Source of the DNA: Azolla caroliniana
Lineage: Eukaryota > Plantae > Polypodiophyta
Direction of reading: 5' to 3'
Length of the DNA: 64,000 nucleotides
Assembly: GCA_043228905.1 (NCBI GenBank)
Contig: JBHGNT010000015.1
Location: 4,278,001-4,342,000, forward strand
The notes under the pieces are model-generated. The model ran no database searches, was not told the origin of the DNA, and was given only the letters and a program-made list of their open reading frames with translations. Below, one piece after another: positions 3,034 to 57,300 of the stretch. Made by a program: the position numbers and the translations under genes. Numbering within the stretch: the stretch's first letter is position 1; every line of letters begins with the position of its first letter.

Positions 3034-3050
3034 TGGTGAACCCAACGTGA
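3034..3050 (+). promoter_or_regulatory. Primer-binding site complementary to tRNA-Trp 3' end (1 mismatch)
   Basis: TGGTGAACCCAACGTGA; the copy at 15278-15294 reads TGGTGAACCCGACGTGA, matching plant tRNA-Trp ...TCACGTCGGGTTCACCA as recalled. Confidence 0.8.
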
Positions 3051-3066
3051 AGAGTGGTAGGGGAGG

Positions 3067-3710
3067 ATGAAGCTGGATGAGGAATATGTCATGGAGGCAA
3101 TGTCAAAGATGATGATGGAATTTTCAAGAAAAGAGAAAAGACGAGATGCAGCCCAACAAGCCGTCGAGAGTGTGGTCGAGCGAGTCGGATGTTTCAATGG
3201 GGGTGAAGTGCAAAAATTTCTAAAGGCCTACAATGCTAAGATCGGCTTGAGAGGTGTGAATGAAGCACTAAGGCTGGAGTACTTTTGTCAAGTGGTGGCC
3301 GAACCAATCTACGAAGAGATGAAAGAGCTTCAAGAAGGTCACAATTCATGGGTTTCCTTCGAAGAAGGATTACGAGAGGCATATGGTTACAAAGAACCGA
3401 AGGGACAAAGTCTGTACAAGTTCGACCAATGGGTGTCATCAACAAAGACACCCACCAGAGTGCTATGCATGCATTCGTTGAGTTTGAGTATTGCTTCGCT
3501 CAACTCTCGGAGCGGGATCAAGGATTGGTGGGGGCGAATAAAGTCCTTATGTTCGTAAAGTCGATTGATCGGAAGGAAAGTAAGGCAATTGAAATCCATC
3601 TTAAAGATGATGATGGAGCAAATGGCCTCACCAAGGATTGGGCTGAAGTTGAAAGAGTATACCGGCGACATGACAAGAGGACGATGGGAATCTTGTCGAC
3701 ATCCTCATGA
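3067..3710 (+). pseudogene. Gag-like ORF of element A (frameshifted)
   Basis: FNGGEVQKFLKAYN...SWVSFEEGLREAYG resembles a retrotransposon capsid; continues in another frame (3285..3710); homologous to 15320-15660. Confidence 0.6.
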
Positions 3711-3780
3711 CCCATGAAGGATGATCGGAGAGGGACGACATGCGGCAACACACCACCACTAAAGGAAGAGAGCTTGAAGT

Positions 3781-6700: not shown

Positions 6701-9154
6701 ATATGGATCAGACGGCGAAATGGGATACCGACTCTGGGACCCCGAACGCAGACAAATCGTTCGAAGTTCGGACGTTGTGTTCAACGAGTCGGCTATGAAT
6801 CCATCAGTCGAAACACCGATCGAAGTCCGAAGGGTAACATTTTCCGATGTGCCGACCCTTCAAGAAGGCCCCGCTCTTAACACACGGTCAGCTTCACGGG
6901 TAGCTGAACCTTACACTACCGACTCGGACAACTCTGACTCGGCACAGCAGAATAATTCGCTCTCGGACCATCCGACCTTGATACCCGATACGACCAGTCC
7001 AATCATACCTCGACGATCCGAGAGACTGTCGCAACCTCCGGAAAGGTATTCTCCTGGAATTTTCTTCACCGACGCCGGCGAACCGACGTCTTACGAAGAA
7101 GCATCGACATCCGTCGATTCAGCCACCTGGCATCTGGCAATGGAGTCGGAAATGCACTCCATTCGGGCAAACAAGACTTGGGATCTGGTCGAATTACCTA
7201 AGAATCGACGTGCTCTTCCTTGCAAGTGGGTTTATCGACTAAAAGAGACGTCTGATTCGACCACCCCAAAGTACAAGGCCAGATTAGTTGCGAAGGGCTT
7301 CCGACAAGAATATGGCGTCGACTTTGACGAGATTTTTTCACCAGTGGTGAAAATGACAACCCTTCGTTTTCTACTCGGCGTAGTGGCAGCCGACAACTTG
7401 GAGCTGATTCAGCTAGATGTCATAACAGCCTTCCTCCATGGTGATCTTGAAGAGGAAATTTATATGGAGCAGCCAAAAGGCTTCGTGGCAACTGGCCAAG
7501 AACATCTAGTCTGCCGACTCAGGAAGAGTCTATACGGCCTCAAACAGGCACCGCGACAATGGTACAAGAAGTTCGACGACTTCATCCAATCGATCGGCTT
7601 CTCAAAAAGCGATGAGGACCATTGTCTTTTTACCAACACAGCTCAAGATGGATCACCCATCTTCGTCATCATTTACGTGGACGACATGCTAATTTCTGGA
7701 CGCCACGCGGGCGAACTTGCCGATCTCATTCGGCAATTGCGGTTGAAGTTTGCCATGAAGGACCTCGGTCCGGCAAGACACATACTTGGCATGAAGATTA
7801 GTCGGCATCGCGATAAACGACATCTTTTTTTGTCTCAGACCGACTATATCGGACGTGTCTTGGAACGCTTCAACATGCAATCAGCCAAATCTGCTTCAAC
7901 CCCGCTCCCCATGAATCTTCGGCTCTCTCAGCGAGACTGCCCGACATTCGGTCCGGAGGGGGAAGATATGAAGTCGGTACCGTATGCACCGGCAGTCGGC
8001 TCCCTTATGTACCTGATGGTCGCGACACGGCCTGATATTTCTCATGCCGTAGGAGTCGTTAGCAGATTTATGCACAATCCTGGCCGATCGCATTGGAACG
8101 CAGTCAAGCATGTGTTCAAATATCTGGCTGGCACAAAAGACCACGACATTCTTTTCGGTTCGAACTCAACCTCGGGCGTAGTCGGTTACACCGACTCGGA
8201 CTTCGCCGGCTGTATAGACAGTCGGAAATCAACAACTGGATACTGCTTCAAATTCGGCAATGGAGCAATTTCGTGGAAGTCGAAACTTCAGGAGTGCACA
8301 GCGACCTCAACGACCGAAGCAGAATATGTAGCTGCGTCCGACGCTGCAAAAGAAGCTTTGTGGCTCGGCCGGCTGGCACACACGTTTCGACAAGTCGACC
8401 ATGACTCGGCCCCAGTTGTCTATAGCGACAGTCAAGGTGCTGTTGCCTTGTCGAAAAATCCGGTTCACCACAACGCCTCCAAACATATCGACGTTCGATA
8501 TCACTTCGTTCGGGACTGCGTCATTTCAGGGAAAATCGGTCTAGAGAAAATATCCACAACCGACAATGTCGCAGATGGAATGACCAAGTGTCTTTCGGCA
8601 GACCGCTTTCGGTCCCTTCGGCATCAGATGGGCGTAACGACAAACCAGTCCGGTTAGAGCCGAACACAGCGCAGGATGGTTTCAGACAACTGACATCAGT
8701 TCCTTAATGATCGGCTTCAACTCTTCCGACCCGACCAGTCCGGCCTTCTGCCTTCAGACCCTGCCGACTCGAACAAAACTGATATGTCCGAGAACCTAGG
8801 TTTATACCTGTAATCTTAGATAACCCATGTATACGCCCATTACGGGGGAGTGTCGAATACAAGTGTATAATGGACGTATTCACACTATCCCTTTGTATAG
8901 CTCAAGTTTGGGCCATTTGTGTAATTAGCATAAATGGTAGTTGCCCTAAGTTTGTCACTATATAAAGTGACCTAGTAACCTTTTTGTAAGGTTGGTTGTA
9001 TTATTGTTTCTATTGAATAGAAAGAGTCTTTTGTGCCTCCTCTCTCTCTCCCTCTCTATCTCTGTGCACGATCTTGGAAACTGTCATACGCAGGTACTCA
9101 ACCCCAATTGAATGCTACTTGATCTTCCGCATCGACACGGCCTTGTCTTCAACA
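3781..9154 (+). mobile_element. Full-length, very young Ty1/copia element B
   Basis: 304-bp LTRs 3781-4084 and 8851-9154 differ at one base. TSD GAAGT (3776-3780 / 9155-9159). tRNA-iMet PBS TGGTATCAGAGC 4087-4098. PPT GGGGGAG before 8851. Confidence 0.98.
4626..8657 (+). pseudogene. Copia gag-pol polyprotein (gag, CCHC knuckle, protease, GAG-pre-integrase, integrase, RT, RNase H) with one in-frame TGA at 6201-6203
   Basis: CNYCKKPGHIKADC; WLLDSGASFH; LVHSDVCGP; RTDNGGEF; IYVDDMLI; YTDSDFAG; KHIDVRYHF. ORFs 4626..6203 and 6207..8657 share a frame. Confidence 0.97.
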
Positions 9155-11024
9155 GAAGTGGGGAGATAGGTCGGTACTCAACATAGAGGCCTTCGTAAAG
9201 GAGGCATATGAGAGTTTAAAGGTGCAAGTTGAGGCCAAAGAGAAGCTTATAAAGGAGCCAAAACCGAGGCTATTGGTGATCAAGGAAGAAGAGACCTCCC
9301 AAAAAATATGGATTAATGATGTGTCCAATACGAAGGCCCAAGTTCGGTACGATGGTACCATGGGAGAAGGTGCAGAACAAGTCACCTTCTCGTCTTGTGG
9401 AGAAACGACGGCCAAGGATGAGGCTGATGACTAGAAGGAGAACGCCACTTTGAGGGAGAATGAATGTTTTGGAACACGCACCGTTTTCGAAACATCGAGT
9501 GATGAAAGTGCAAGCATGAGCAAAGCTTGCTCAATCAAGAGGGTTGATCAAGAGATAGCCATCGAGAATGACGTCAAGCCGAAGAGGGTAGACAACGATC
9601 ATGAAGAGACTTTCCCCACAAAGGTTCTAGAGACATGGGCATTAACCGATGTAAGACCCAAGCGATGGAAGGTTGCGGTGAGGAAGCAAAGGTCAAAGCC
9701 GATGCGAAAAACCATAAGGTGGAAGTGGCTAAGGTTAGCATGAAAAAGGCAAAGGCAGACTACGAAATCATATGAATCCCTCCACACTCGTTCGAGAGAC
9801 TTGGGCATTAACCGATGTAAGACCGAAGAGAAGGACAATGGCGGCGAGGAAGCAAGGGTTGAAGCTGGTGTGTGCGTCAAGGAGGTGAAGCAAAGAAGAA
9901 CAATGGAAGCCGATGTGTGCGACAGAGAGATAGCCAAGGAGATGGCTATGGACAACACGACGAAGAAAAACGATGATCAAGATGATAATTCCTTCACAGA
10001 TGTTCCAGAGACTTGGGTAGTTGCATCCTAAAGACAACGTGAAACCCAAGAGCCGGAAGGCCGTGACGAGGGAAGGGTCAAAGTTGGTGTGCACTACAAA
10101 GAGGCCGAACAAAGTGTGACAAGATGATGAGGGCCAAGCATACCAAGAGGATTTGAAAGGTGTTCCTCGGGAAGTGATCACGTCTTCTAACATGAGGGAG
10201 GAGACTAGCATGAAGATCAGAGGTATGGTGATCAATTCAAACGTGAGAGTTTACCACAATGAACGGCAGAAAGAGAGGCGTGCAATATGGTATCTTAGAG
10301 ACCTCGAGGTGAGCATGTGCTTGAAGGGTCTACAACGGGTAGTCAGCATCGACATTCAGAAGAGGTCTTGTGAAGGCAAGTGATGGACGAGAAAAAATGA
10401 AGGATCTAAGTTTCTTGACCAAGGAGACTGATGGGATGAAGGCAGCACACACAAAAATTGTGAAAGGTTATGCTCAGGAGGGGCGAAGGGGGCCATGACA
10501 ACCATTCATGGCATTGCGAAGTGCAAGCGAACGATATGGTGGATTGGATGCCAATGATGGTTTGGGTGGAAAGAATGGATGTGCTCAAAATGGAGGAATA
10601 TAATTGATCACCGTAACCGAAATCTCACACTCTCTTCTTGGCACGTACCAGAGGATGTGCGGTTTGGTGGGGGTGGATGTCGTGAAGATTTTCGGCAACA
10701 ATGTGAAAATCGTGTGGAACGTACAAAATCGAGAAGGTGCAATGTGCACACGTTTGAAAGGAGTGATGGTTACACATGTATGTTAGCACGTTAATGTGCA
10801 CGCGTGATGTGTGTTTAGGTGTTCATTACACAAAATATAAAAATAAACCTAGGGCCTAGTGAGATTGAGTGCATACAAAGAGGGGTGCATGCAAGATTTG
10901 AACCTTGTACCTCCAAGGTAGAAGAGAATTGATTTACCACTAAGACTATTATCATACACTTTATGTATTTAATTTTCATGTTCAAATTACATACGAAACA
11001 ACAATACAAAACCGTGTGCATAGA

Positions 11025-19687: not shown

Positions 19688-22495
19688 TCGGTAGCCGAAC
19701 TAATTGTCACCGTAACCGAGGAATATGCATGGCCGGGTCTTTGGATCTAACTTTCCTCTCCGGTCCTTATCTACATGCACATACTCGAGACACCCGAACA
19801 CCTTCAGATGCCGGTAGGATACCTCCTTACCGGTCCACACTCTCTGTGGCGTGTCCCCGTCCAAGGGTACTGAGGGTGATCTATTTATCACATATGTCAC
19901 CGTCGACAGTGCCTCAGCCCAAAACTTCTTGGGTAGTTTTGCATGCGCTAGCATACTCTGGACCCTCTCCATTATGGTCCGGTTCATCCTGTCGGCCAGT
20001 CCGTTTAGTTCCGGCGTCTTCGGCACGGTAAATTCGAGCCAGATTCCCTTCGAGCAGCAGTACTCCTCGAATTGCCCCCGGTATTCTCCTCTGTTATCTG
20101 CTCAAACCGCCTTTAGCTTCCGGCCGGTTCCTCTTTCCACTCTCGTGTGGAGCTCTTTGAAGACGGATAACACCTGATCCTTTGTCTTCAACGGTGTGGC
20201 CCACAACTTCCGGGTGTGGTCATCTATGAACGTCACGAAGTACTGCGCTCTGGCATGCGACTTCGTGTCTACTTGACACACATCTGTATGCACCAACTCC
20301 AGTGGTGCATTACGTCTCATCGGTGGCCTTGGTCGGAAGGAGGTCCGGTTTTGCTTACCGGCCAGACAATCAGTGCACTTCTCCAAGTGCACGTTCTTCA
20401 CTGGAATGAGGTTGTCATCTGCAAGCCTCTTCATCCCCTTCTCGCTCATATGACACAGTCTCTTGTGCCACAGCTCACCGACCGTGTCTGATGCCAAGTT
20501 CACTACTTCCGGACATAACCGGGCATTAATCAGGTACAATGTGTTGACCTTCCGGGCCCAAGCCACAATCAGGCTCCCTTTGTTGAACTTCATAACACCG
20601 TTCCGGATGCTACCCGTGTAGCCTTCATCATCTAGGCGACTGGCTGATATCAGGTTTAGACGAACCTCCGGAACGTGTCAGACATCCTTCTGCAGCAACT
20701 TGCATCCGGTTGGTGTTGACAGCCACACGTCTCCTATGCCGACAATTCGGCATGTACCTTCATTCCCCATCCAGACACAGCCGTGATCATCGGCTGAGTA
20801 GGATGAGAAGCATTTCTGGTCCGGGGTAAGGTGGAACGATGCTCCGGAGTCTACCACCTAGGTCATCTCGTCGCCGGCAAGGTTTATCTCACTCTCCTCG
20901 GTGATGAGCATCAACTCTTCTTCACTTGCCGCGATTGCCGTCGTCCCCTTCCGGTCCGTTCCCCTCCGGTCTTTATCGTTCCGGTCCGGTATCCGCTTCG
21001 AATCGGTACCGTCGGTTTCCTTGTCCTTTCGGAAATGCTGACAGTTCTTCTGGAAGTGTCCTGGCTTGCCGCAATAGAAGCAAGTAGGTCTCCCCCTTGA
21101 CTTTGACCGTGTCCCTGACTTTTCCCGGTTCTGGGGACTACGGTTTCTTTGGCTTCCGTAAGGAGCGCTTTGGAGTCGGAGCTCGTATCCTTATCTTTCC
21201 GACGCGCCTCCTCATCTAGCAGGCTCGACTTCACTCTTGCTAGGGATAACCATTTCCCTTCCGGCCCGGCGTTGCCCAAAGTGACAACCAACGTCTCCCA
21301 GCTATCTGGGAGGGAACCGAGCAGGAGTAGCGCTAGTACCTCATCGGCGAGAGGTACTTCCAATGACGTTGCCTGGTGTATCAGCCCCTGGAAGGCATTC
21401 ATGTGCTCTGCCATGCTGGAGCCATCTTGGTACCAGAGTCTTACTAGCTTCCGGAATACCGAAACCTGATTAACAACATTTTTTTTTTGAAACATAACGC
21501 CGATCTTCTCCGAGAGCTCATGAGCCTTGCTCTCTTCATTGAAGTTGTTGTACAGGCTCATGTCGATGAAGCACCGTATGTACGCCGTTGTCTTCATGTG
21601 CATCACCTCCCATATCGCGGCGTCGATTTTGTCCGGTCTCTTGTCCCTGAACTAAACCCGCAGCCAGAGGTCTTTAACCACGAGCATGTCCCTCATCTTC
21701 GACTTCCACACTGAATAGTTGGAGCCGGTGAGCTTGAACATGCCGCCAAACGATTCGTCCATTTTTCTGTGTCGCTTCGCTCTGATACCACTTGTCAGGA
21801 ACAACATGCTCCCTATACGCAACGCTCGGCCACAACCGAGCTTAGAATCATGCACAGAAAACGGGAAATAAATGCACGACACAGTGAAGAGAAGTGTACA
21901 TGGGATGTTTACGTGGAAAACCCAAACTAAGGGAAAAAACCACGGCAGCCCACAGGCTACAAACTATCACTATGTTAGAATGTACAATAGTGAGTTCACA
22001 GAGGCAACGACCTCATGCTCACGATCTTCGCCACAGGTGGCGGTTACAACAGAGGCAACAACCTCTTTCTCTCTCTCTCTCTCTCTGTACAAAGTTACGC
22101 GCTCTCTCTTTTCTTCCACCAACAAGAAATGACAACAACTACTAAAAGTTTGCCCTAAGTCATATTTATACTAATATGACTTTTCGGCTATTTACAAATG
22201 TAGCCACGATGGACTCTCAGAAACATATTTACAAATATGTCTCTTCATCCGGAGAGCGCTTCTCACCGGGTTTGCACCATCCGGCTCTCCGTAACCGGGT
22301 ACTCCTCATCCGGTTCTCACCGGGTCTGCACCATCCGGCTCTCCGCAGCTGGGTACTCCTCATCCACTTCTCACCGGGTCTGCACCATCCGGCTCTCCGT
22401 AGCCGGGTACTCCTCATCCGGTTTCGGCCTCGGCTGAGTTTGCTTATCAGCACTGTTTTTCTCCCTTCCCATCCGGAGGGACCTGTCTCCCAACA
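17896..22495 (-). mobile_element. Ty1/copia element E (close relative of D) inserted in the gag of D; 5' LTR 21793-22495; 3' LTR lost by deletion
   Basis: iMet PBS 21779-21790 (minus); gag, PR, INT (LVHTDVCQ), RT (LYVDDMLI) and RNase H up to KHIQ; D gag resumes at 22496. Confidence 0.9.
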
Positions 22496-42017: not shown

Positions 42018-42054
<37 letters not shown>

Positions 42055-43521
42055 CACACACATAACTCACATCTCTTCCGCTTTACAAGAATCATATCCG
42101 ATTCTTTACATGGTATCAAAGCGATTTGGTAGCTCGATCTAGCCCATTCGCCTCATCGTGATCGTGTGTTGTGCTCTACGCCGATGACCAAGAACCGGCT
42201 CATCTCTATCGTAGCTTCGCTACATAGCTCGCATTCGAAGAGAGAAGAAGAAGAAGAAGAATCGACATAATGAATACTCAAATGGGGAGCGCTCTCCCTA
42301 CTGAGAAGTTGGATCGAAACAACTTCGCATCTTGGGAGTACAAGATGCACCAATACCTTGTCGGACAAGGATATTGGAGCTACATCAAAGGAGCGCATGA
42401 AGACCGACCCGCCGAAGCGGCTCCCGGATACGCAACATGGGTGCAAGCCACAAGCCGCGTGATGTATTGCTTGGCGACATGTGTTCACGATCACATGCTC
42501 GGCTACATTCGCGAAGCCAAGACTCCGAAGGAGGCATGGGAAAATCTACGAAAGATTTTCGCGGCAAACACAACCGCAAGACGGCTTCAACTCCGCCAAG
42601 AGTTGAACAACATTGAACAAAGGGACATGTCCATTACGACATACACCTCGAAGATCAAGGAGCTTTGTGATTCACTCGGCTCAAGAAGCGTAAATATCGA
42701 TGATGATACGATGTTTCAAATATGCCTCGGCGGCCTCGCACAATGGTTCGGCGTGATGCAAACCGCCGTTCTAGCACGAGAGAAATCTCCCTCCTTCTTC
42801 GAGCTCCAATCAATGCTATTGGTTGAAGAAAACCACGTGTGCACAAGGAGCAATGAGTCGGAAGGCCACATGCTCTACACGCAGTCGAACAGAGGAAGAG
42901 GACACAGATGGTCGAGAGGCCGATTCAGCCAAGGACAAGGCGGACGAGGTCCGACCTACAAATACTCAAATGGGCAAAATGGAAGCCAACGAGGAACCTT
43001 TGCAAGAAGGGGGAGCTTCCACTCCGGCCCGAACCGTCAAAACGCAACCGAATGTGGATATTGTGGAAAGCTCGGCCAACACGAAGAAGAGTGCCGAAAG
43101 AAGATGCGTGAATCGCATCAAGAATGGTTCCGAGAACTTCGAGAGCCGGACCGACCCGGTTATAACACGTTCGCGTTCACAAGTGGAAGGATCGCGCATA
43201 AATGGAAGGATAAGGGAAATTTTAGGGGTTTTTCAATGATTTTACAAAACACATTGATACCAGTATCATACATGTTCAAACATACTATGAAAAAGGTTAA
43301 AAATCCACTATTTTCGTGATTTAGAAGTAACTAAAAAAAGACGAATTTCAAAAAGATACATTCTCAATTTATATCACAAACTTTACAACCAATGTTATTT
43401 TATAAGAAACGATTTTTTAGAAATCATAAGAATTCAAAACACATGATTTTATATTACTCGATTTGTTACAAGCGGAATGTAGTTACACTTAATAGCCAAA
43501 TATACATTCATGATCACTCCT

Positions 43522-46303
43522 TTACGGAGAATCACTACTATAACTAATATACAATGACGATTCCTCCTCATCATCCTCGGATGTACCAATCAGTGCATTA
43601 TCTTCGTCAGAAACCAAATGGTTTGACTCTAGATTATATGTAGCAGATCTCGTTTTCCTTTGACTCGAGCCACCTTGTAGACCTGGTAATTTTTCTTTTA
43701 TTATATCTATTGTTGACTTCCTTAATCGTCCGGCTTTTGTAAGTGTGAAGTCGTACACGATGATATCCACATCAGAGATATCAAGGGTCGAGGTGTTACG
43801 AATGTTTTGCTTGCTCTTCCTACCTCCCCTTCTTGTTTGGCATTCAATCATCTCCAATGTATACTTACCTGTAAAAGCATTTGCACTTCTAGTGTTGTAC
43901 CAATGAACATTTATAGACTTGATCGTGTTTTCTATTTCATGCATTAGCACTTCTAGAATTTTACCAACCCAAAATTGGTGGCCATGTGAGTTCTCATCAG
44001 CCGGCGTTGCAATCAACATCCCCGCGGTGAGCTCTTGCAAATTTCCTTGCCATCTAGCTTCGGCTGCTTTGGTCATCCTTGGTCCCACATAAATGTCTCT
44101 TTGTTGTGGATGGACCAAGCTGTCATTAATCGCATTTACTAGTTGCTCCGGACTTCTATTTACGCGATCATGTTGCAGCGACCATGTGAATGGCGTTTCC
44201 AAATTCCAATTATCAATAGATACACAATTGTCTATAATTTCTTTTTGATCACTATAAAATACATCCCACCATGACGTGTCTTGTTGTGCGGCATATTTCT
44301 TGGCGGCCTCAATATGCTTTCTTTTTTTCTTCTAAGGCTTGGAGCCATGACCGTTTTTGTTCTGATACCAAGTCGCTCTGCAACTGTCCTTTCTTCTCAA
44401 TTGGCATTTGCTTAGTTCCATGGACAATTGTACTCGGCATACAAAGTAATAACTGGCAACCACCTTCAGGTTCCCATGTTGTAGAAGATGAATATTGTTT
44501 AGCATACAAAAGTGTAGAACCACTTATTCCATTTTTCTTTATCATAAAAATGTGATTGAAACTTATATTGTTTAACTGAGCAAGCACTTTAACATTCCCA
44601 CCACCCCCATCTAATATATATCTCTTAAAGTCATATACCTCCTTCAAGTGTAACACTTTTGGGCGTGGTGTATAAGCATCACAAATGACATCAAATAGTT
44701 TAGGTAAAGTGAAAGCATCATGCCGAGACAACTGTCTGGAGAATGTGCTAAACATCTGATCTATATGGTCATGTGTGTGGCCAACCAAAAGGAAATTGAC
44801 TTTCACTTTCGTAAACAATTCTAGGTTGACCAACATACTTAGATAGCCAAATACAGTTGAATTTTTGTTCTCTCTAGCAATATTGTCCAATTGAATGTAT
44901 AGAACAGGGGGGAAAGGTTGTCCCCAAGACATCAAAACTCGGTGAATCACTGTAACTGTTAGGTTAGGGTCATTGTGAACATTGGGCTAAGTAATGAAGA
45001 CGTGAGGTCGAACAGACCTATTATAAGCCAAGCATCCCACCAAGTGCATTTGAACAAGGCACTCATCATTGACATCTTTGGGGAGCCTCCGCATATGCGG
45101 CAAGCATGTCTTCTTCAGGTCCATGCCATCTATCATTAAGCACATGTATTGTTCGGGCCTCTTCAAACACTTCTCTCTATGATGCATCACCTTCCTTCGT
45201 TCTAAGGATTGTGCCTCACGATGCTCTTGTAGTAACTTCTTACTCGTATCCTTTTCCATTGATGTCTTTGCACCTTTAGCCAAACTTTTAAGATTTGCAC
45301 AAATGGAGCAATACCCCATACGTACTTTACGAGGAATAATAACATTTGAAAACCGAGCTCTCCATAATCTTGTGAATTGGCTATAGGTGATAGACTTATT
45401 ACGTGAGCCCAACATATCAGATCGATAGACATCATAAACTTCCCGACGTGTATAATTATCAGAAAGATGCATCCTACCTGTAGTGGGCATTACTTCACAA
45501 TTTAACTGAAAGTAAGTTTTCATCCAGCCAATAGCATGTCTTCCAATTGCCCCTTTCATACTTGGAACCTCTTTACAATTGAGCATCTGATCCCCGCTAA
45601 GTAGACGTTGTTGTACTCTATGTAGCCGCATGTTACTAACACATAATGCAATTTTCAATGCAACTCTACATATCTGTTGCGCATGGAAGATATAATACTC
45701 GAATGATACTTTGATCCCCGTACATTTGTCAGATACTAGTTGCATATGTGACCCGAGGTAAGTGTCTTGCTCATCACCGGTCATCGAAAAATAGTATCGC
45801 CTTAATTCTCGCAACTTTGATTTTCCAATCATAGACATACAACCACGGGCACAACATATTTTTTTGACATCAAATCCAATCTGTTTATCTGATGTCACCA
45901 AGCTAAATCTAGACAGACGAATTCTTCGTGGGATTCTTCTAATATGCATAGGGCTCCCAGATTTCTCTTCCTGCATAGAGGTTGGTGTAACCTTGTTACA
46001 GTCTAATTCTCTGTTGTGACCATCGCCAATGTTATTCAATGTTTCCTGGGCACTTCCTTCATTCTTGGTATCTTTATTAATATCGTATTCTTCAATAGAG
46101 AACTCTTCACATGTGTCATTATTTACATTCCCTGTAGATGAGCTCAGACAATATTCTTCGATAGAATATGGTGAGTCGGTCGACAAACAATATTCTTCAA
46201 TCGAATATGGTGACTCTATTGACAAACAATACTCTTCAGTAGAAAACGATGGGTCTGATGACAAACAATATTCTTCAATCGAGAACGGTGAATCTTCACT
46301 CAT
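43522..46303 (-). pseudogene. Transposase (~925 aa, DDD-type RNase H fold, Sola-like) with one in-frame stop (44987-44989) and one frameshift in an A-run (~44320)
   Basis: LMIDGMD, LYIQLDNIARENKN and FLLVGHTHDHIDQMFS catalytic motifs; Cys motifs CC.RGC, ICR, YCSIC; the three ORFs join into one intronless reading frame. Confidence 0.85.
46139..46294 (-). repeat. Four 39-bp (13-aa) tandem repeats at the transposase N-terminus
   Basis: DSPFSIEEYCLSS / DPSFSTEEYCLSI / ESPYSIEEYCLST / DSPYSIEEYCLSS. Confidence 0.9.
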
Positions 46304-47127
46304 GGCTTAAGGTCTAGATAGGGCTCTCTAAGTTATGTGCTTAGGGTAAGGAAAAAAACTAATAAGCTCCTCTCTAAACATAAACTTCTCTCTAAACAAA
46401 AGTCAAATCAATAGAATATCTATATTATGTAATATTCTATTAATACAATACATCAAAAATTATTTTTAATAAAGTAATTGTACTTAAAATATCAATTATT
46501 ATATAAACTAGATCTATATGAAGTTAAATCAAGTAAAATATAAAACTAATCATTAACAAGCCATGAATATGTTGGATTAATGTTAAAATCATTGGCTAAT
46601 TAATGGCACCCATTTTGATATAGAACGTCTCACTCATTGGTTCTTTAATGCTCACCATTTTAAATATTAGACTTATCAATCATTGATTAATTCATGCCAA
46701 CATCTTTAATACATAGCATTTGAGAGTCATAAAAATTGTTGCTTTTAGTAATCAATCATTGGTACATTCATGAACCTCTATCATTGTCTCCTTTATAACC
46801 TTTGAAGTCATTGTAGGTTGTTATGACTATAAAAGATTGATCAATATGTTAGTTTGACTTTGTAATCATTAATACAATCATAAGTTACTCTAGTTAATGT
46901 GACTATGGTTACCAACTAACTATCCTCAAAGTTACCAACCTTGGTTAAGGTGACTATGGTTACTTTAACCAATGTTGTCAATCCCTATAACTAGGAAGAC
47001 CTCGTCATATTTCACTCACAAGAGCGTACAGAGCGTACAGAGCACACAGAACGTAGAGAGCACACAAAGCACACAAAGCACAAAGCACGAAAGCGCGATC
47101 TCCGCCTCCACTTCCACACGATCAACC

Positions 47128-50100
47128 ATGTCTTCAAAGAGAATTGAGCGCGAGGACTCCAGGTAGGCCTCTGACACTGTGGACATTTTTGTAAATATGT
47201 TTCGTCGCTCAAGAACTCGATACGCCGTATCGAGTTCATGTATACAATACAAACTTTATACATGAACTCGATACGGCGTATCGAGTTCATAATTTGTTTT
47301 TGCTTTTTAAACGGGAACTCGATACGGCGTATCGAGTTCCTGTTTAAAACCTAAACATTAAACAGGAACTCGATACGCCGTATCGAGTTCCCGTTTAAAA
47401 CCTAAACTCTAAACACGAACTCGATACGCCGTATCGAGTTCCTATTTAAAATCCAAACTTTAAATACGAACTCAATACGCCGTATCGAGTTCGTATTTAA
47501 AGTGTAGGTTTTAAACGAGAACTCGGGTAGGTTTTAAACAAAAACTCGATACGCCGTATCGAGTTCCCGTTTAAAACCTACACTTTAAACGGGAACTCGA
47601 TACGGCGTATCGAGTTCGTGTTTAAAGTTTGGATTTTAAACAGGAACTCGATACGGCGTATCGAGTTCCCGTTTAAAAAGCAAAGAAAGCCCGTTTAAAG
47701 TTTAGGAATTAAACAGGAACTCGATACGCCGTATCGAGTTCCTGTATAAAAGAAGGCTCTGAGAGAGAAAAATTGTGTTTTTGGGGTAACAAATAATTAT
47801 GGGGTGGAAAAGATATCAAATTGTCTAGCAAAATCAGTCTTTTTTATGTTGACTTTCCTTACTTTTAAAGAAAAACATGCTCTAATTATAGGTGTTTTAT
47901 GACCTACTTTAGCTTAAAATAGTAGAAAATGATCCACAAATTGCCTTTACGATAGCAAATTCTCCTCAATACAGGTTTGGAATCTATATAAGTCATACCT
48001 ACTATTTAAAAGAATATATAACCCTGTTTACTTATTACGATATATATTTTCTAGGTTGAATAGCCCTGCCTATAATAGATTTTTGAATATAGGACTGCTA
48101 GTGGGAACTGTTCTTCATGTTAATATACAACCTTAATCTACGTGACTACCTAACTTATGTTTTTGCATACACTTTCTTAAATAGGTCGTTTGAGAACCTG
48201 TCGGACCGACCCGTGAAGAAAATAAAGCTTCGCATACAAGGTTCTCCAATCGAAGCCCAAACCAAGGTAGCTCCAGAGACCATGAAGAGAGGAAAAAAGC
48301 TTCTCTTTAACGAAGAGACAAAATCTCAGCCACATAGTGATGTTAGCCAAAAGAAACTTGTCGCCGCTACTGGAGGTGAAGACCTTCCTGACCGAGATCT
48401 AACGGACAAGGAATGGTGTATGCAATATATCGACTCAAAGAAAAAAGTCGTATTGTATACAGCAAAGAAGAAGGGTGAGGGGGCAGCTTGGAAAGGAAAC
48501 CCCATTTATGTATGGCTGTATTCTACGATTTGACTATGAAGATGCAGATTCGGCCAACATACTAGTAATGATAGAGTGCTCCAAGGGGGTACGTAAAGTG
48601 TTCCTTTCAGAAGACCTTTTAGTAAAGGAATCTTGTGGGCTAGAAGCGTTCAAAAAAGCACTTGATAGCTCACAAAACCTTATTGTTACCTTGAGGCCTT
48701 ATATACAAGGACATGTAACTCTAAGAGATGAAGTGCCCTCCCCATTGAAGGCCACAAAAAGGGTATCCAAAGTCTAGTCAAGACCACCAAAGAAGAAGAC
48801 AACCAAAATGTCCGATACGGATTCAACAAGTGAAAACGAAGAGGAGGATAATAAGGGGACGCCAGGAGCTGAGTTGGCCTCAGGTGTTTTGTCATCCGAG
48901 TAGAATAAGATAAGGAGAGAGTTAATGCAACGGAAACTGGTCAGGAAAGGGCAAGTGTTTAATTTGCCTATAACACACATCCATCGGCCCCCTATTGATG
49001 AAAAAACAGGTCGACGACCACTTGAGATTAGAGAGCCACACCGCATGCATGTTCAAAATCTCAAGAAAAAAATGAAAATTAATCCTCATGCCACTGTGGT
49101 GCCTTTTATTGTTATGGTAGATCCTGAAGAATGTGAAACCATTGAAGATTTTGATATTAGAAAGCATGATCAATATAATTATTTTGTCATTGGTGGATCA
49201 CATTCAGCAGAGGCACGTTGGCAACTTGTGAGAGAACATCCAACAACTTTCTTCTTCAAGTATGCCGAGTGCAAAATTTATGTTGGGCTCACAACCGAAG
49301 AGGCTAAGCTGTTGGCATGGGACCATAATAATGATAATGACTATAGGCAGAAAATGTCGTCCATTGAGCGTATACGGTTCTTCCACCACGATTATTTAGA
49401 CGTGAAACAAAAGTTTGGTGTGAAGTTACATCCAGGCCTTCAATGTCAATGTCTGCATGAAGTCGGCATTGTGGTAGATGATAATGTTAGGTCCGATGGT
49501 CTTCGAAAGTATGAGTCTTGGTTTCAATTGGCGTTTAGAGATGGAGAAGTATGGGACCTACAAGATCAAATCTTCTCAATGTGGGAGAATAAGGAGGTAA
49601 AGGGTCAACGACAAAAGAAATGTAGGGTTGACCCTCAACTAGAGTTAAAGTCACAAGCCGCCAAGAAAATTGACTTGACAATTGAAGAAGCGGCAGACGA
49701 CATGAAGCTGTCTCTATGGAGAGCGATGCAAGGTATTAAGGACGAGCAGCGTCTTGTGTCGGTTTTGTCAAGGGTTGTGGCGAAAGATTTAAGCCTTGAA
49801 GAAATGGTCACTGAGTTCAATAAGTAAGTCTTTCAAATACTGAAATTGTAGTCTATCTGGTGTAATTCAAAGTTCTAATCTTGATTTCTAATTTTACAGT
49901 CATAAGGTGTACATGAAGATCCAAGAAGTTATGATGAAACAACTTGGATGTATAACTTGGGAACAAGTGACCGAGGATTATCCTCTAACGTCTTCGTATA
50001 AGGCATTATGAGAGTATTTTATTGCATTCAAGGATTGGGTTAGTATTCATGGTTTTTCATTACCCTTTCATCATATGTAGAGCTTGTATAATAATACCTG

Positions 50101-51396
50101 ATGTCCTATTGCTTCTATTAGAAACCGTGTCGAGGCAAGAAACAAGGAGAAGTTAAGGATATACACAATTTCCCTACATCCTTCCTTGCACATCTCGAGC
50201 AAGCCAGAAAAGAAAAGGATCGTCGCTTAGTCAAGGCGTACGAAATGGAGGAAGATGGCTCCTTTAAAAAATTTAGCCACAAAAAAGATATTACGAGAGA
50301 TCTTTACTACAATGTGGTTTGCGGTGATGTCATCGACTTGATCCAGAAGGTGCCAAAGAAGGAATATACGCTAATGATTGCGGATATTCCTTACAGATTT
50401 CGAATGGCTGGGTCATCATACGACGATGAACCGTTTAGGTTTAAACAATTGGAGAAGATGGTCAAGGATTTCGCTGAGCTAACGACCGCATCCTTGTGGC
50501 GAATAGTTGTCTTTCATAGTATGGACCAAGGGTACTCGGTAGCTCAAGCTTTGAGATCTCGTTGCCATGGCATCGAGAACCTTGCATGGTAAGGATTATT
50601 TATAGGTGTCTTTTACTATATTGCATTTCTTAAGGTTGTTGAATCTATTCTTAACTCGATGAATTATTTTTTATAGGATCAAGACCAATGTAAATAGAGG
50701 GCCAACTTTTCGGTTCGTTAATGCCATTGAAAACATAACGGTTGGCTACTTCGATGAAATTAAGAAACAGAGAATCAAAGAGCATTCTAATGAAGTGGGA
50801 GGTTCAAATCTGTTGGTATATCCAGCAGTGACACGGAAATTGCGACGTGTCACCACGACAGAACAGGGACTTGTCAACCCATACCAAAAACCTCAACGAC
50901 TTATGATGCGCTTGATCGAGATGTTTTCTGTCGAAGGAGACTGGATATTAGATCTCTTTTCTGGCACAGGTATTCCTCGAACTAGGGTAACGATCTTGAG
51001 ATAACCAATCCCTTTTTTTTCGTTTGACAGCTAAATCTTATTGTTACTTACATCACAGGAACTATGTCTGCATGTGCATTGAAGCTGTTTAGAAATACAG
51101 TTGCATTGGAGAAGGACGAGGACCAAGTTATATTTATTAATATGCGGGAGTGCCCAGACCAAGATGAGGAGGTCGGTGCAAAGAACCTCGCCAATACAGA
51201 AAGGTTTCAACCTGCTTCGCGAGAGCCTATTCCTCCATTAGCCGGCGAATCGGGGGAGCTAATAGAGCTTGATGATGAGCTTATAGAAGATATTTCGTTG
51301 GCTCGGCTAACAGGGGAAACCAATGCACGTATAGCCGAAGACAGTTCTACACAAGATGATGAAGAAAATGACGTTGATGAATTGATTGCTATGTAA
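47128..51396 (+). pseudogene. Six-exon gene: ParB/Srx-like domain fused to a beta-class N6-adenine/N4-cytosine DNA methyltransferase (~970 codons)
   Basis: Exons 47128-47162, 48185-49823, 49900-50038, 50122-50588, 50677-50969, 51059-51396; all introns GT-AG and frame-compatible. Motifs YFVIGGSHSAEA and GLTTEEAKLLAWDHN...MSSIERI (ParB-like); VCGDVIDLI, MIADIPY (motif IV), W|IKTN, NPYQKPQRLMMRLIEMFSVEGDWILDLFSGT|GT (motifs X and I). Lesions: frameshift ~48500, TAG 48775, TAG 48901, TGA 50009. Confidence 0.88.
47213..47741. repeat. Array of 25-bp palindromes GAACTCGATACG(C/G)CGTATCGAGTTC at 51-bp period in intron 1
   Basis: Starts at 47213, 47264, 47315, 47366, 47417, 47468, 47519 (truncated), 47542, 47593, 47644 and 47717; AT-rich 26-bp spacers. 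Confidence 0.97.
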
Positions 51397-54300
51397 TAGA
51401 CTCTATGAAGAATATGACACTGACGATTTGTTAAGATTTCACATTATTAATACAAATTTTGGGTTTTACCTAGTGGATTCTATTCTTTATAATCTTCTAT
51501 ATGTTTCAATTTTATTTTTATATACTTGATTAGTAGATTTATGACATTGGTTTCACCGCGTGCATAGCTGACTACCAAACTTATGGAGAAACATGAACTA
51601 GTTTAAATGGAGGCTGATTTTGGTCCAAGCTAACCTTAACAGAACATGGCCCTATAATTGTTGCCATGACTGTCCATGTTGTTATTATGGATCTTTGTCT
51701 TCTATTGGTAAAACTATTATGTTTCTATTCCATTGCTGCTTAGATTGTGTAGTGTGTTGATAATGGTTCCAGTTGCGTTATCGTTCGGAGTTTGATCTTG
51801 TGTGAATCACCTAAGCAATAGAGTAGATCAATTTGAAATACAGGTATGAAGGCCTAATAGGTTTGTTATTTCCACGACATTATCCTAAAGTTCACTGCCT
51901 TACATTGTCCACAATTATAAACATATGGTTTGATCCCATATGAACAAACTGAGGAATAGATTAGATCAACTTTAAATACAAGTATTGAATACTTTAATAA
52001 GTTAGTTATTCCAATCACTTATCCTAATGTGCACTATCCTACATTTTCCACAATTACATACATGCACGTATGGGTCAAAGTATAAATTATATCTCATTTT
52101 ATTAGTATGGATACAAGTACACCTGATATTTTTGTAAAACTTACCTAATTAATATAAGTCTTTAAGTTAGTGTTTCCCTTGTCGCACAGTAGTGACATAT
52201 TGAGCCATAGTTGAACTTTATTATGCCTACATTAACTTATCAACATGTCTAAACTTGCATGATTTCTAATGATCTCCACTCGTAGATCTATCATGTATTT
52301 TTATATTTGCAAATTCTCATCAAGTTGAGGAACATGTGATACTAGTGCATCCAATTTTTGTAGAGAGGGTGTATTTGCTTTGTTTTAAGAAGATTCTACA
52401 AGTGGAATGCACAATCCTTCCACTTGTGAACGCAAACTTGTTCTATGTCGAAACCGGAGACGACACTACGCACCCGATTCGGCACATCGGCAATGTTCCG
52501 TTTGGAAAAGAAGGTAAGCAAAATTACATTAAAAATGTCTTGCATGTACCGACCATTACGAAGAATTTGGTCTCCGTCGGCCAAATTGTAGAGCAAGGGA
52601 TGCAAGTTCGATTTAATCAAGGTGGTTGCATCATCGAAAAAGAGGGCCGACTCATTGCACACGGACGAAGAGAGGGCTGAATGTTCATTCTCGACTCACA
52701 CGAGATGAAATCGGCCATGTTCGCAAAGGGCATGAAAGCTGACTCCGACATAGAGTTATGGCACAAGCGGATTGGCCATATAAATCTCCAAAAACTCAAA
52801 GCAATGAAATCAAAAGGAGTCATCATCAGACTCCCAACATTCAAAGAGAAGGATATTGAAGGTGTATACGAAGCGTGCCAATTTGGCAAGCAACACCGAC
52901 ACCCATTCCTGAAAGAGCGGAACGTGAGCAAAGGTCTAGTCGACGTAGTCCATTCCGACGTATGGGGGTCGGCGCAGACAGCTACATTAGGCGGATGCTG
53001 ATATTATGTGCTCTTCATCGATGACTTTTCTAGGCACACTTGGATCTACCCGATGCGGCAAAAGAGCGAAGTGTTCGGACACTTCCAAAATTTCAAGAAT
53101 GAAGTCGAGAAAGCCACGGGCCGACATGTACGATGCCTTCGATCGGATGGCGGCAAGGAGCACTTCATGGACAATTTCACGGTGTATCTCCGAAAGGAAG
53201 GAATTCAACGAGAATTCACTTGCCGACACACTCTGCAACAAAACGGGGTAGCCGAGCGCAAAAATCGGCACATCCTCGAAGTAGTGTGGGCCATGATGAA
53301 GAAGAAGCATATGCCCAAGTCATATTGGGCCAAAGATGCAAATACAACAGTCTACCTAATGAACTGGTGCACAACATCCGGCGTGCACGAGCTCACTCCA
53401 CACGAAAAATACTTCGGAAAGAAGCCGGACTTACCGCACACCCGGATATTCGGCGTGATAGCGTACGTGCACATCCCCGACGAGAAGCCTCAAAAGCTTG
53501 GCCCGAAGTTGGAGAAATGTATCCTTGTTGGATACTCACTGGAGCAAAAGGGGTACAAGTGCTACAACCCCTCAACTCGAAAATCTCGAGTAAGTCGAGA
53601 CGTCGTTTTTGACGAGTCCGCATCCTGGTACGCACCAGAGACAACTCCGACTCCGACTCCACTCGACCCGGAATCCGTCGAACAAGAGATAGTGGATGAA
53701 GATGGCCTTACGTGCATGTTCGAAGAAAGTCCGATCACGACCCAACTGAGCGGACCACAAGAGCCTTTGAGCGATCAAAGCACATCACGACCTAGCCCAA
53801 AGATGACAAAGGCAAGGCGAAAATGGCAGAATACGCAGATGATTGCTTCGACGATGATGAGTCGACTCACTCACTCGACAGTGAGTTCGGCGGCTTCAAT
53901 GTACCAATCGGAGCTAAGAAAGCCCTCATCTTTGCAAATGAAAAGCTCCGCCGATCCACCCGTGAAAAGAACCCCGTAAGCCGATTCGGCTACAACAATT
54001 ATATGGCGTACCATTGCCCCTTTATGATGAAGGTAGCGATAGTACGGGAGCCGGAAACCTTTCCCGAAGCCACGAAGGGCCCGCGATGGATCGAAGCAAT
54101 GAACGAGGAGATGCAGGCACTACCGAAGAACAAGACGTGGGATCTCGTTCCCACCTTACTGCACAAAAAGGCGATCGGATGCTGATGGATTTACAAAGTG
54201 AAGTACAACGCTGACAGTTCCGTCAACCGCTACAAACACATGGAGTTGACTACGAAGAGACCTTTGCCCCGGTGGCAAAGATGACTATGGTACGGACCGT

Positions 54301-57300
54301 AATTGCACTTGCCGTGGCGAAAGGGTGGCACCTCCATCAAATGGACGTCAAGAACGCCTTTCTACAAGGAGAATTAGAAGAGGAGGTGTACATGATACAA
54401 CCACCCGGCTTCAACTTGAGCACCCATCCGAAAGTTGTATGCCGACTCAAGAAGCCACTCTACAGCCTCAAGCAAGCACCGCGTGCTTGGCATTCGAAGA
54501 TAACGCAATATCTTCATCAAATCGGCTTCCGTATGTCAAAATCGGACAACTCCGTCTACATACGAAGTGATTCCACAAGTCCGATCGTCATCATCTTATA
54601 TCTGGATGACCTAGTCATTGGAGGTGAGCATCTCGTCGAAATCAATAAGGTCAAATCCCTCCTTTCCAACAAGTTCGAGATGACGGACATGAAGGAACTC
54701 CACAACTTCCTCGGCATCGAGGTAATTCGGACTCCGGTCGGAATCATGATTTCTCAAGGGCACTACATCCTCAACTTGTTATACAAGTTCGGTATGCCTA
54801 AGTGCAAATCCGTGGCAACCCCGCTCGATCGTAATCTAAAACTAGATGCGAACTCCGACACCAAAGCATGTGAGCCGACTCAGTATCGGCAACTCATCGG
54901 GAGTCTCATCTACCTCACAATCACTCGACCCGATCTCAATTATCCGGTCAGTCTCCTTAGTCAATTTATGCAAACACCGCGTGATACTCACTTGGATTGC
55001 GCTAAGCAAGTTCTACGATACGTGAGTGGCACAATGGATTGCGGCATCCTCTACAAGACCACGATGCCAATACGACTCAAGGGGTACACAGACGCCGATT
55101 GGGCCGGCTACAAAGCTGATAGAAGGTCAACCTCCGGATTTGTTTTCTCCCTCGGTAGCGGAGCAATATCTTGGAGTAGCAAGAAGCAGCTGACCGTCGC
55201 TCTTTCGAGTACGGAGGCGGAATACAGGGGCGCAGCCGTAGCTGCGTGTGAAGCCGTATGGCTCAAGAGGATTTTGAAGGATCTGGGCGTACCCATCAAG
55301 GATCCGACCTCCCTTTACTGCGACAACATGAGCATTATCTATCTGGCTCAGAACCCGGTGTTCCACGCGCGGACAAAGCACATCAAAGTGCACTATCACT
55401 TCATCCGAGAGCGCGTTCTAGCTGGCGATGTCAACCAACAACACATTAGCACAAATCTTGAAACGGCCGACATCTTCACTAAAGCCTTAGGAGCCGACAA
55501 GCTGTGGCAGTTCATGACCGATCTCAGATTGACGATCCCTGACCTGCCAAGCTTGAAGGGGAGTACTGAAGACATTACGCAATAACACGTGGATTACGCA
55601 ACCGCACAATGAAGCCGATCTACCGCGCAAAGCCGCGAAGAAAGACGCAAGACGAAGCGTAGAATTCGCAACGACGCACAACGCAAGTTAGAGCACGGAT
55701 TCCAAAACTCTGCATAAATGCGAGTTGACGCGGACTTTGGAACGCGAGTCGAAGCGGGTTTCAGATACCATCTAAAACCGACCCGACTTGAGCTTGAGGG
55801 GGCGTGTTGAGAATCAAGCTCAACTTGGTCTAGTGTGTGAACTCCCCTTGAGAGTGAATAGACACTCCAACGGTCAAGAGTCACCATTATGTCACCACTT
55901 TGTATTCTAGCATTTAGTATCAGTCATAGAATCATATTCTATGACACATAACTTATGAGCTTTCACATTCCCCATGCTCCATGAGTCTTGCAGTTAATGA
56001 AGAGAGAGGGTGACTATATAAAGAAACCTCCTCCCACCTTGTATGATGTTGAGTCTTTCTCCTTTGTTAATACAATCTACCTTGCGTATTCTCTGTGTAT
56101 TATTCCTTGTCTCTCTCTCTCTCACTCACTCTCTCTCTCATACACACACATAACTCACATCTCTTCCGCTTCACAAGAATCATATCCGATTCTTTACAGG
56201 CCGAGTAAAGTCTCGGTTGTCGGACGCATTCAAGATGAAGGACCTGGAAAAACTTCACTACTTCCTCGGGATCGAAGTGATCCACACACCAGACAACATA
56301 TTGTTATCTCAACAACATTATGTGTTGAATATTTTGTACAGATTCTGCACGACAGATTGTTGATTTGTTTCCATTCCTCTCGACAGAAACCTGAAGTTAC
56401 ATCTCGACTTGGGAGCGGCATGTGATGAGAAATGGTTTCGACAAATTGTTGGGAGCCTCGTATATTTAACTATCACTCAACTTGACCTTAGCTATCCAGT
56501 CGGTGTGATAAGTCAGTTCATGTTGAGACCGACTATCGAGCCTCTTCAATGTGTGCATCGAATATTGCGATATGTGAACGACACAAAATATCGAGGACTG
56601 TTGTACTAACACGGTATAGCTGAATATCTAGTCGACTATACTAATGTCGATTGGGCCGGGGATGCCACGGATCGTCAGTTGACATCAGGTTTCATGTTTT
56701 TCCTTGGGAGCACGGTTGTAGCCTAGAGTAGCAAGAAGCAGTCGACAATGGCCTTATCAAGCACCGGTGACTGCTATAGGACTTACGGGTATAATATGAG
56801 TAGCATGTAGCTATCCAAGAACGTCGTTTTCCATGCTCACACGAAACACATAGAAGTGTATTATCACTTTGTGGGCGAGCGGGTCCTGAGTGGTGAAGTC
56901 GATCTCAGATATGTTTGAACCAGTTATAACATTTTTCGGAGATGCTTGGGTTATAACATCTAAACATGCCGCACTTGAGGGGGATAACATGCAGAGCAAT
57001 AGGAAGAGAGCAACATGAGCAACGGGAGGAAGCTGAAGAAGATGCCGAATAGACTAAAGAAGTCGACACACCCGGAAGAGCCGGAGTAGGTGGCCATGGC
57101 GGCAGAGTCAAGAAGGACAAAGCCGACCAGAAGAAAAAGGTCAAGAACAAGACATGGTCGGATGTGGTCAAGGGCCTAGAGAATGATGACAAAATGGAGT
57201 CAGCCAAGTCAAACAAAAGCGGGAACGAATCGGAGCCAACCGATTTGGTCGAATAGTTCGATTTGGATGAGCCAAATCTCATGAAGGCCAATTGGATAAG

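Follow-up and report, generated by a model that had tools for sequence, protein, structure and literature searches.

We analysed a 64-kb window (64,000 nucleotides; "the window" below means this whole stretch) of Azolla caroliniana contig JBHGNT010000015.1, in which a copia element is interrupted by an insertion of 9,279 bp at 43164-52442. The insertion is bounded by terminal inverted repeats (TIRs) and holds a transposase gene, an array of ten palindromes and, head-to-head with the transposase gene, a cargo gene for a ParB-like domain joined to a predicted DNA methyltransferase (MTase). It represents one copy of a Sola1 DNA transposon of autonomous type and is a land-plant member of a recently recognised kind of element, first published in 2025 in algae. 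Its boundaries, its transposase gene and the array lie as follows (ORF, open reading frame; TSD, target-site duplication).

43160-43163, no strand: left copy of the TSD, TTAT, placed by empty-site copia contigs that join 43163 directly to 52447
43164-43199, plus strand: left TIR of 36 bp, beginning AACAC and matching the right TIR at 32/36 positions
43178-43211, plus strand: end motif CA(C/T)AA(G/A)TGGAAGGAT in two direct copies, found by repeat search, with a mirrored pair at 52398-52428
43522-46303, minus strand: transposase gene (Pfam DUF7869), in this copy as ORFs 44987-46303, 44309-44950 and 43522-44202
44987-44989, minus strand: in-frame TAG stop that this copy alone has; at 44987 (plus strand) nearly every contig from another copy has G
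46148-46279, minus strand: 39-bp tandem repeat (3.4 copies) in the N-terminal coding region of the transposase, encoding SIEEYCLS-type peptide repeats
47213-47741, no strand: ten 25-bp palindromes GAACTCGATACG[C/G]CGTATCGAGTTC between the transposase and cargo genes
52407-52442, minus strand: right TIR of 36 bp, the near reverse complement of the left TIR
52443-52446, no strand: right copy of the TSD, CTAT

The left end of the element reads AACACGTTCGCGTTCACAAGTGGAAGGATCGCGCAT, and an exact 20-mer of the TIR core, GCGTTCACAAGTGGAAGGAT, occurs in the window in the two TIRs only, where none is expected by chance. Logan contigs from four public DNA runs, which cover two organisms and leaf-metagenome samples, were compared with positions 43100-49000 (5,901 letters). 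Dozens of contigs from other copia copies run from 43163 directly into GTCGAAACCGGAGACGAC (window 52447 onward), and this empty-site junction, with GTCGAAACCGG... following 43163, is seen in the four runs. Since the empty-site contigs pass straight from 43163 into 52447, the insertion is precise and has a 4-bp TSD, TTAT/CTAT, with one mismatch; the original prediction, made from this sequence, that 36-bp TIRs (32/36) bracket a 9.3-kb insertion is thereby confirmed. The same prediction had the insertion splitting a copia pol. The copia host stands, with remnants of its long terminal repeats at 42022-42110 and 56110-56198 (89 bp, 96.6% identical), but the insertion point lies in the gag/protease part of the polyprotein. 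The possibility that the copia protease region was lost at the junction, leaving the TSD unreliable, is ruled out by the empty-site contigs. The host copia lacks a DSGAS-coding segment (GTCGACTCCGGTGCATCAAACCATATGAC) found just before 43112 in other copia copies and has therefore undergone an internal deletion of its own; its pol frame ends at a stop at 52680.

The motif ACAAGTGGAAGGAT occurs twice per element end and is unrelated to the array palindrome; the end motif listed above is probably a transposase-binding motif. A large number of contigs agree with the element over its terminal 36-52 bp alone and diverge beyond (with loose ends behind positions 43199 and 43215), and one contig fuses 44239 to 46571, which points to deletion derivatives or non-autonomous relatives with the same ends.

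ORF 44309-44950 of the transposase gene matches Pfam DUF7869 at E=2.5e-42. Positions 44309-46303 form one frame of 664 codons whose sole interruption is the TAG at 44987-44989, a codon that reads TAC in other copies. An A-run near 44322 has one extra base here, nearly all other copies having one base fewer, and without the extra A the frame continues into ORF 43522-44202. It follows that the transposase gene of the family is a single frame of about 926 codons that no intron interrupts, and the window copy has two lesions, a stop and a frameshift, acquired after insertion into copia. The element had been called decayed, which holds for this stop and this frameshift; the decay is mild only, and the cargo exons found are all open. 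Residues D392, D473 and D515 (numbered on the window copy, with X in place of the stop) show no or almost no variation among 19 aligned DUF7869 proteins from charophytes, a prasinophyte, molluscs, cnidarians, echinoderms and amphioxus. The window copy keeps all three, in line with the DDD transposase predicted on the minus strand, and retains the blocks LDN..ENKN and VGHTH..IDQ.FS conserved in the alignment. A literature search on DUF7869 found no paper.

The defining features of Sola elements are a DDD transposase and 4-bp TSDs; the elements are known from moss and are rare in flowering plants (PMC10741241). Sola1-1_Ec32 of Ectocarpus has AACCG termini, a 4-bp TSD and Repbase Sola1-1_PPa as its best blastp match (PMC12477816 supplement), and its transposase as printed there contains VQVDNTVAENKN...MMVGHTHIQIDQIFSCF. 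The blocks MDG, DN..ENKN and VGHTH..IDQ.FS are common to the window and Sola1-1_Ec32 transposases, which were compared by motifs only. Because Sola1-1_Ec32 carries the same motif blocks, we take DUF7869 to be the Sola1 transposase core. The window element thus combines a 4-bp TSD, a DDD transposase, Sola1-like motif blocks and TIRs (36 bp, 32/36), and an AAC start is common to the termini here and to those of the Riccia, metagenome and Ectocarpus Sola1 elements. DUF7869 (Sola1-type) transposases are also abundant in oysters, mussels, corals, sea urchin, amphioxus and a crinoid, and some of the homologues are fused to zf-MYND (PF01753) or OTU (PF02338). In the window copy, the 39-bp repeat at 46148-46279 encodes repeated (D/S)SP(Y/F)SIEEYCLS peptides.

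The ten complete 25-bp palindromes of the original prediction were all recovered at 47213-47741 (window palindrome CGATACGCCGTATCG, ten copies). Their start-to-start spacings are 51 bp five times and then 74, 51, 51 and 73 bp, with 51 bp in seven of the nine, and within the window no full site or half-site lies outside the array. Unit number and length of the array differ among other copies of the family in contigs of the four runs. The interval from the transposase start to the array holds repeats of other kinds (46587-46772, 46893-46963 and 47017-47082), namely AATCATTGGCTAATTAATG four times at a spacing of about 46 bp (45-76 bp), GTTAATGTGACTATGGTTAC twice, 51 bp apart, and 9-bp AGAGCGTAC repeats.

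The cargo gene lies on the plus strand in five coding blocks, whose exons were searched one at a time.

48904-49823, plus strand: large exon with the predicted ParB/sulfiredoxin (Srx)-fold N-domain (about residues 16-149) and a helical domain (about 150-307)
49824-49899, plus strand: intron GTAAGT...TTTTACAG, phase 2, read from the sequence, with a frame switch that fits the period-3 pattern
49900-49992, plus strand: small exon in a different frame, 3' border approximate, placed by the substitution phase against contig L009 and a weak match to P0010
50122-50588, plus strand: exon with MTase motif IV (DIPY, 50383-50394), 5' border approximate
50589-50676, plus strand: intron with GT..AG borders and fitting phase
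50677-50969, plus strand: exon with NPYQKP and motif I (ILDLFSGTG), Pfam PF01555, GT..AG borders
50970-51058, plus strand: intron with GT..AG borders, whose removal restores the FSGTG-TMSACALK reading frame
51059-51396, plus strand: last exon, with the MTase C-terminal part (TMSACALKLFRN...EKDEDQ) and then an acidic tail

The exon order is colinear with the Ginkgo model, and exon 50122-50588 with residues 350-446 of Ginkgo Gb_37443. For the fourth intron, between about 49990 and 50122-50140, no placement with fitting frames was found in this copy. Judged from its reading frames, the gene is predicted to have at least four spliceosomal introns. The divergent, spliced ParB-like/MTase gene on the plus strand has thus held up, its MTase part through the sequence match to PF01555 and its ParB fold by structure prediction only.

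The MTase part was recognised through ORF 50663-51001, which matches Pfam N6_N4_Mtase (PF01555) with E=5.5e-8 and 33.5 bits (curated cut-off 26.7); a full-length Ginkgo relative scores 65.7 bits. The order of the motifs, IV (DIPY, 50383-50394) before I (NPYQKP...ILDLFSGTG, about 50930-50969), is that of the beta class. D-x-P-Y, YQKP and FSG(S/T)G are conserved in relatives, and no exchange is seen in the motif IV residues D and P, in YQKP or in the G-x-G loop among relatives that range from charophytes to seed plants and are only about 30% identical. These features predict a beta-class amino-DNA-methyltransferase. The base that it methylates is probably adenine (N6-methyladenine, 6mA) rather than cytosine (N4-methylcytosine, 4mC), because motif IV begins with D and because the nearest curated and solved relatives (CcrM, M.RsrI, M.MboIIA and DpnA) are all adenine-specific.

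The 307-codon ParB-like block (48904-49824) has 370 relatives at E<=0.001, among them proteins of Chara braunii, Riccia sorocarpa, Adiantum nelumboides and Ginkgo biloba. At least five gene models come from Ginkgo, including the closest full-length relative, Gb_37443 (44% identical), and in several full-length relatives Pfam N6_N4_Mtase follows downstream of the ParB-like domain. Neither phmmer nor a 22-sequence profile matched the block to any ParB chain in the PDB. An AlphaFold (AF2) model built on 22 relatives, with a predicted local distance difference test score of 85.8, was matched by Foldseek to ParB 7bnk at E=1.3e-5, and its best PDB matches are ParB, Noc, KorB, PadC and sulfiredoxins. 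VIA aligned residues 16-149 to 7bm8_A with Z=10.4 and a root-mean-square deviation of 2.3 over 99 residues; the KorB structures 8qa8 and 8qa9 reach Z=9.0 and Z=8.0, sulfiredoxins Z about 7, and whole-chain VIA alignments cover 184-207 residues. The N-terminal domain of the cargo protein, as modelled, has the ParB/sulfiredoxin fold. The family signature, GG-x-HS..A followed by GLT..EA..LA..HN.D..(F/Y)R, parallels ParB boxes II and III; G98 and H100 are nearly invariant, the only such residues in the Box II-like stretch, and N142 of the Box III-like stretch is invariant.

Related genes were found at other loci, some of them together with a transposase of the same kind.

Riccia sorocarpa, locus L001: an element of 10.9 kb, with AACAC termini and TAGA as a clean TSD, its DUF7869 gene (minus strand) and ParB-MTase gene (plus strand) head-to-head; a 16-bp palindrome, TGTATGCGCGCATACA, in nine perfect copies, and a near-palindrome array of 50-bp period directly upstream of the cargo gene
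Adiantum, loci L006 and L007: an unannotated transposase upstream of the ParB-MTase gene and on the other strand; palindrome TGTATTCCAGAATACA in 5 (L006) and 11 (L007) copies, all between both genes on a lattice of about 31 bp
Metagenome contigs, JGI L002 and ENA L008: a transposase/ParB-MTase pair, L002 being a whole element with AACAC termini
Chara, loci L003 and L005: a ParB-MTase gene with adjoining palindromes, GTTATAGTCCTATAAC five times and TTTATAGTTCTATAAA seven times

All copies that could be scored for all three parts, namely the window, the two Adiantum loci and the Riccia locus, have transposase, MTase and array together, and the two metagenome contigs have the gene pair; the association proposed from the window copy therefore recurs elsewhere. 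One of the metagenome contigs has inverted repeats between its two genes. An exact-seed TIR search in the two Adiantum loci gave noise only. None of the three Chara loci L003, L005 and L011 has a DUF7869 gene within 10 kb of its ParB-MTase gene, and the adjacency at which the locus tags CBR_g31111 and g31112 hint found no confirmation. Each lineage has its own palindrome, beside or between the genes. Since the Chara loci carry palindromes and have no transposase within 10 kb, this suggests that the palindromes track the ParB-MTase gene more closely than the transposase. The spacings are near whole helical turns, as multiples of about 31 bp in the fern (Adiantum L007, 16939-20204), 42-50 bp in the liverwort (Riccia L001, 11605-11734 and 9557-9733) and 51 bp here (47213-47741).

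Per run, 1,100-9,800 contig pieces match the element at 85-100% likeness. These thousands of pieces in four runs indicate that the family is high-copy in the organism; it is strongly repeated in both of the organisms and in the leaf-metagenome samples that the runs cover, and the cargo gene is accordingly no ordinary single-copy host locus. The regions compared for selection were the ParB and small exons and, as far as 50528, the motif IV exon. A copy on ENA contig L009 is 74% identical to the window cargo gene in DNA and 85% in protein, with differences at 11%, 7.5% and 56% of codon positions 1, 2 and 3. The ratio of nonsynonymous to synonymous differences per site (pN/pS) is 0.09 against L009, with four-fold sites saturated (71%), and 0.23 for a second, broken fragment. 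We used pN/pS and codon-position differences instead of the corresponding substitution rates (dN/dS) because dS by NG86 was saturated (pS 0.91). The substitution phase against L009 shifts at 49867-50046, exactly at the frame switch, which is how the small exon (49900 onward) was recognised. The cargo gene is therefore under strong purifying selection and does not evolve neutrally.

The original prediction took the three-part layout to be new among plant cut-and-paste elements, a novelty that published algal elements have overtaken. Ectocarpus Sola1-1_Ec32 (Dinatale et al., Genome Biol 2025, PMC12477816) carries a Sola1 transposase and, on the opposite strand, a ParB-like/N4-N6 MTase gene, and its authors suggest that there is a class of accessory proteins which bind the transposon encoding them and modify it. 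It shares with the window element the DN..ENKN and VGHTH..IDQ.FS core, the 4-bp TSD, the AAC termini and the idea of self-modification, the accessory proteins being likened by domain layout. It differs in size (21.5 kb with 282-bp TIRs, whereas the window element has 9.3 kb and 36-bp TIRs), in its 1104-aa product and in its host, a brown alga (stramenopile) and not a land plant, and no palindrome array has been reported for it. Red-algal Plavaka elements (EnSpm/CACTA) with the accessory genes PAG1-3 (Petroll et al. 2025, Bostrychia genome, bioRxiv 10.1101/2025.02.11.637652) likewise combine a PF01555 N6-adenine methylase gene and a ParB-like gene on a DNA transposon, and tandem inverted-repeat arrays beside the ParB-like gene are proposed as its binding sites. 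In contrast to the window element, they belong to another transposase superfamily, measure 17-19 kb and encode separate proteins (ParB with a 2-oxoglutarate oxygenase, and MTase with SET); their ParB assignment comes from a weak HHpred match (E=0.29).

Fusions of a ParB fold with an N6_N4 MTase are enriched in phages (PMC12704722; PMC4738411). The phage and prophage proteins resemble the cargo protein in having a ParB/Srx fold followed by a beta-class amino-MTase on mobile DNA. They are, however, prokaryotic, intron-free and linked to terminase/packaging loci, whereas the window gene, with its predicted four or more (at least four) spliceosomal introns, sits on a eukaryotic transposon and has no Pfam ParBc match. 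KorB-OB of RK2 and ParB-parS offer the parallel of a ParB-family protein with multiple short palindromes on its own mobile element, binding being a prediction in our case; the palindromes of Riccia, Adiantum and Chara even have the 16-bp length of parS. The window differs from both in its 25-bp palindrome, in the fusion to an enzyme, and in lacking ParA and the arginine patch. VANC of the Arabidopsis VANDAL (Mutator-like) elements is also an accessory protein thought to act on short repeats of its own element and to alter its epigenetic state, a parallel that is drawn in the Bostrychia paper too (bioRxiv 10.1101/2025.02.11.637652). Unlike the cargo protein, VANC has no MTase, causes loss of 5-methylcytosine (5mC), writes no new mark, is an unrelated protein and belongs to another superfamily. 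In the limited literature searched, we found no paper on the system in land plants or on palindrome arrays in Sola1.

We hypothesize that the cargo protein docks on the palindromes of its own Sola1 element and marks that element with 6mA. This is the best explanation that we can offer, and we give it an even chance of being right. The ParB-like part would bind the array palindromes as a dimer, and, with intervals close to full turns of the DNA (51 bp in the window; about 31, 42 and 50 bp at other loci), the sites would lie on one face of the helix. Docking could thus tether the MTase to the control region of the element, where it would write 6mA, and the mark might keep the divergent promoters active despite host silencing, or license transposition. 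Both array binding by the ParB-like part and deposition of 6mA are steps that we infer.

Several observations weigh against this hypothesis. On the side of the ParB-like part, there is no Pfam match at E<=10 and ParBc fails for 48904-49824; residues 150-307 are only moderately similar to the helix-turn-helix (HTH) DNA-binding domain of ParB proteins, with Z of 5.3 to the Spo0J-parS chain and 3.8 to the ParB one; and the arginine patch GERRxRA of Box II, which binds cytidine triphosphate (CTP), is missing, the stretch reading GGSHSAEA. A CTP-clamp mechanism is not supported, because the patch is missing and ParBc fails; nor is there a ParA partner gene in the element, which holds the transposase and cargo genes only. 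On the side of the MTase, motif IV is DIPY and not DPPY, a few relatives have H or C for the Y, and motif logic and distant relatives are the sole basis for assigning 6mA over 4mC. As to the palindromes, none that is clean and recurrent was found in JGI L002 or ENA L008, and in Riccia they also lie near the ends and inside genes, which would suit binding by the transposase too. Among public RNA runs, none containing the stretch was found.

The palindromes could instead be operators, the ParB-like protein mainly regulating the two divergent promoters while methylation is secondary or takes place elsewhere in the genome. KorB of plasmid RK2 is a ParB-family repressor whose palindromic OB sites are spread over the mobile element. 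The position of the array exactly between the divergent transposase and cargo genes here, in the fern and in the liverwort is what regulation of this kind would lead one to expect, KorB (8qa8, 8qa9) is among the fold matches at the Z values given above, and ParB-family proteins of mobile elements often regulate expression (PMC12704722). It leaves the strong conservation of the MTase motifs unexplained, however, and the arginine patch that KorB requires for clamping is missing. We consider this operator role unlikely, although regulation and self-marking are compatible and do not exclude each other.

A second alternative, which seems to us quite unlikely, makes the palindromes internal transposase sites that act as a transpositional enhancer, with the ParB-MTase independent of them. 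The internal activation sequence of phage Mu and the subterminal repeats of many plant elements are parallels. The Riccia palindromes some 400-600 bp from both ends (3507 and 13409, with the ends at 2883 and 13814) agree with this alternative, as does the variable length of the array among copies, which resembles that of subterminal repeats. In the window, however, palindrome and half-site are confined to 47213-47741, whereas the element ends bear another repeated motif; that ACAAGTGGAAGGAT differs from the palindrome we count as pointing to the ParB-MTase, and not the transposase, as the partner of the palindromes. Moreover, two Chara loci pair palindromes with the ParB-MTase gene and have no transposase within 10 kb.

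It is improbable, in our judgement, that the MTase is inactive or directed at RNA or protein and that the ParB/Srx domain is a nucleotide-binding (NTP) or nuclease module, not a site-specific DNA binder. Phage ParB-like nucleases provide the parallel for a nuclease-type module. The departure of motif IV from DPPY, with H or C for Y in some relatives, would agree with such a role, and so would the GG-x-H signature, which is like that of the sulfiredoxin and ParB-nuclease type; ParB-fold fusions are known to bind ATP, GTP or CTP (PMC12704722), and inactive MTases of mobile elements have a precedent in the MTase domains of DIRS1 (PMC4738411). Against it stand the invariance of the motif IV D and P, YQKP and G-x-G from charophyte to seed plant, the strong purifying selection on the parts compared, and nearest relatives that are bona fide DNA adenine MTases. 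Finally, the idea that a single transposon copy once took up an ordinary host gene or a bacterial contaminant gene has nothing in its favour among our results and next to no probability, refuted as it is by the co-occurrence of transposase and ParB-MTase in four or more independent lineages, and contradicted by the high copy number in the genome, the introns with GT..AG borders and the purifying selection.

The window thus adds to the algal reports a Sola1/ParB-MTase pair in land plants, which is high-copy in the organism and whose cargo gene is under strong purifying selection, and lineage-specific palindromes between both genes in the fern, the liverwort and the source genome. The idea of a self-marking transposon has so far been founded on a few sentences about algae, and a 25-bp site together with a 307-residue domain and the public long-read data for Ginkgo, Adiantum and Riccia makes this speculation concretely testable. 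If the self-marking hypothesis is true, it would reveal a second way, independent of VANC/VANDAL, in which mobile DNA changes its own epigenetic state. The element is also relevant to the dispute over the existence of 6mA or 4mC in plant nuclear DNA. More broadly, land plants without flowers (ferns, liverworts, Ginkgo and the plant from which the window comes) might harbour active, transposon-encoded adenine methylation, targeted to phased palindromes in the bidirectional control region of the element, as a self-mark that resists 5mC silencing or times transposition, and part of the disputed plant 6mA signal would then be transposon-made; this is a tentative proposal that we regard as rather doubtful in this general form.

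Two of the loci examined hold further units. On Riccia sorocarpa CM100795.1 a second DUF7869 gene (L001 18064-22101) lies 5 kb from the first element; it has no ParB-MTase gene in the examined part of the locus and is encircled by another palindrome, (G)TCCATGAG.CTCATGGA(C), including an array of 21-bp period at 20359-20440. In Chara braunii, GBG86584.1 (L003 10001-39538) is a 1,825-aa model that extends over 29.5 kb with two ParB-MTase units in it; the annotation has probably merged two copies of the element.

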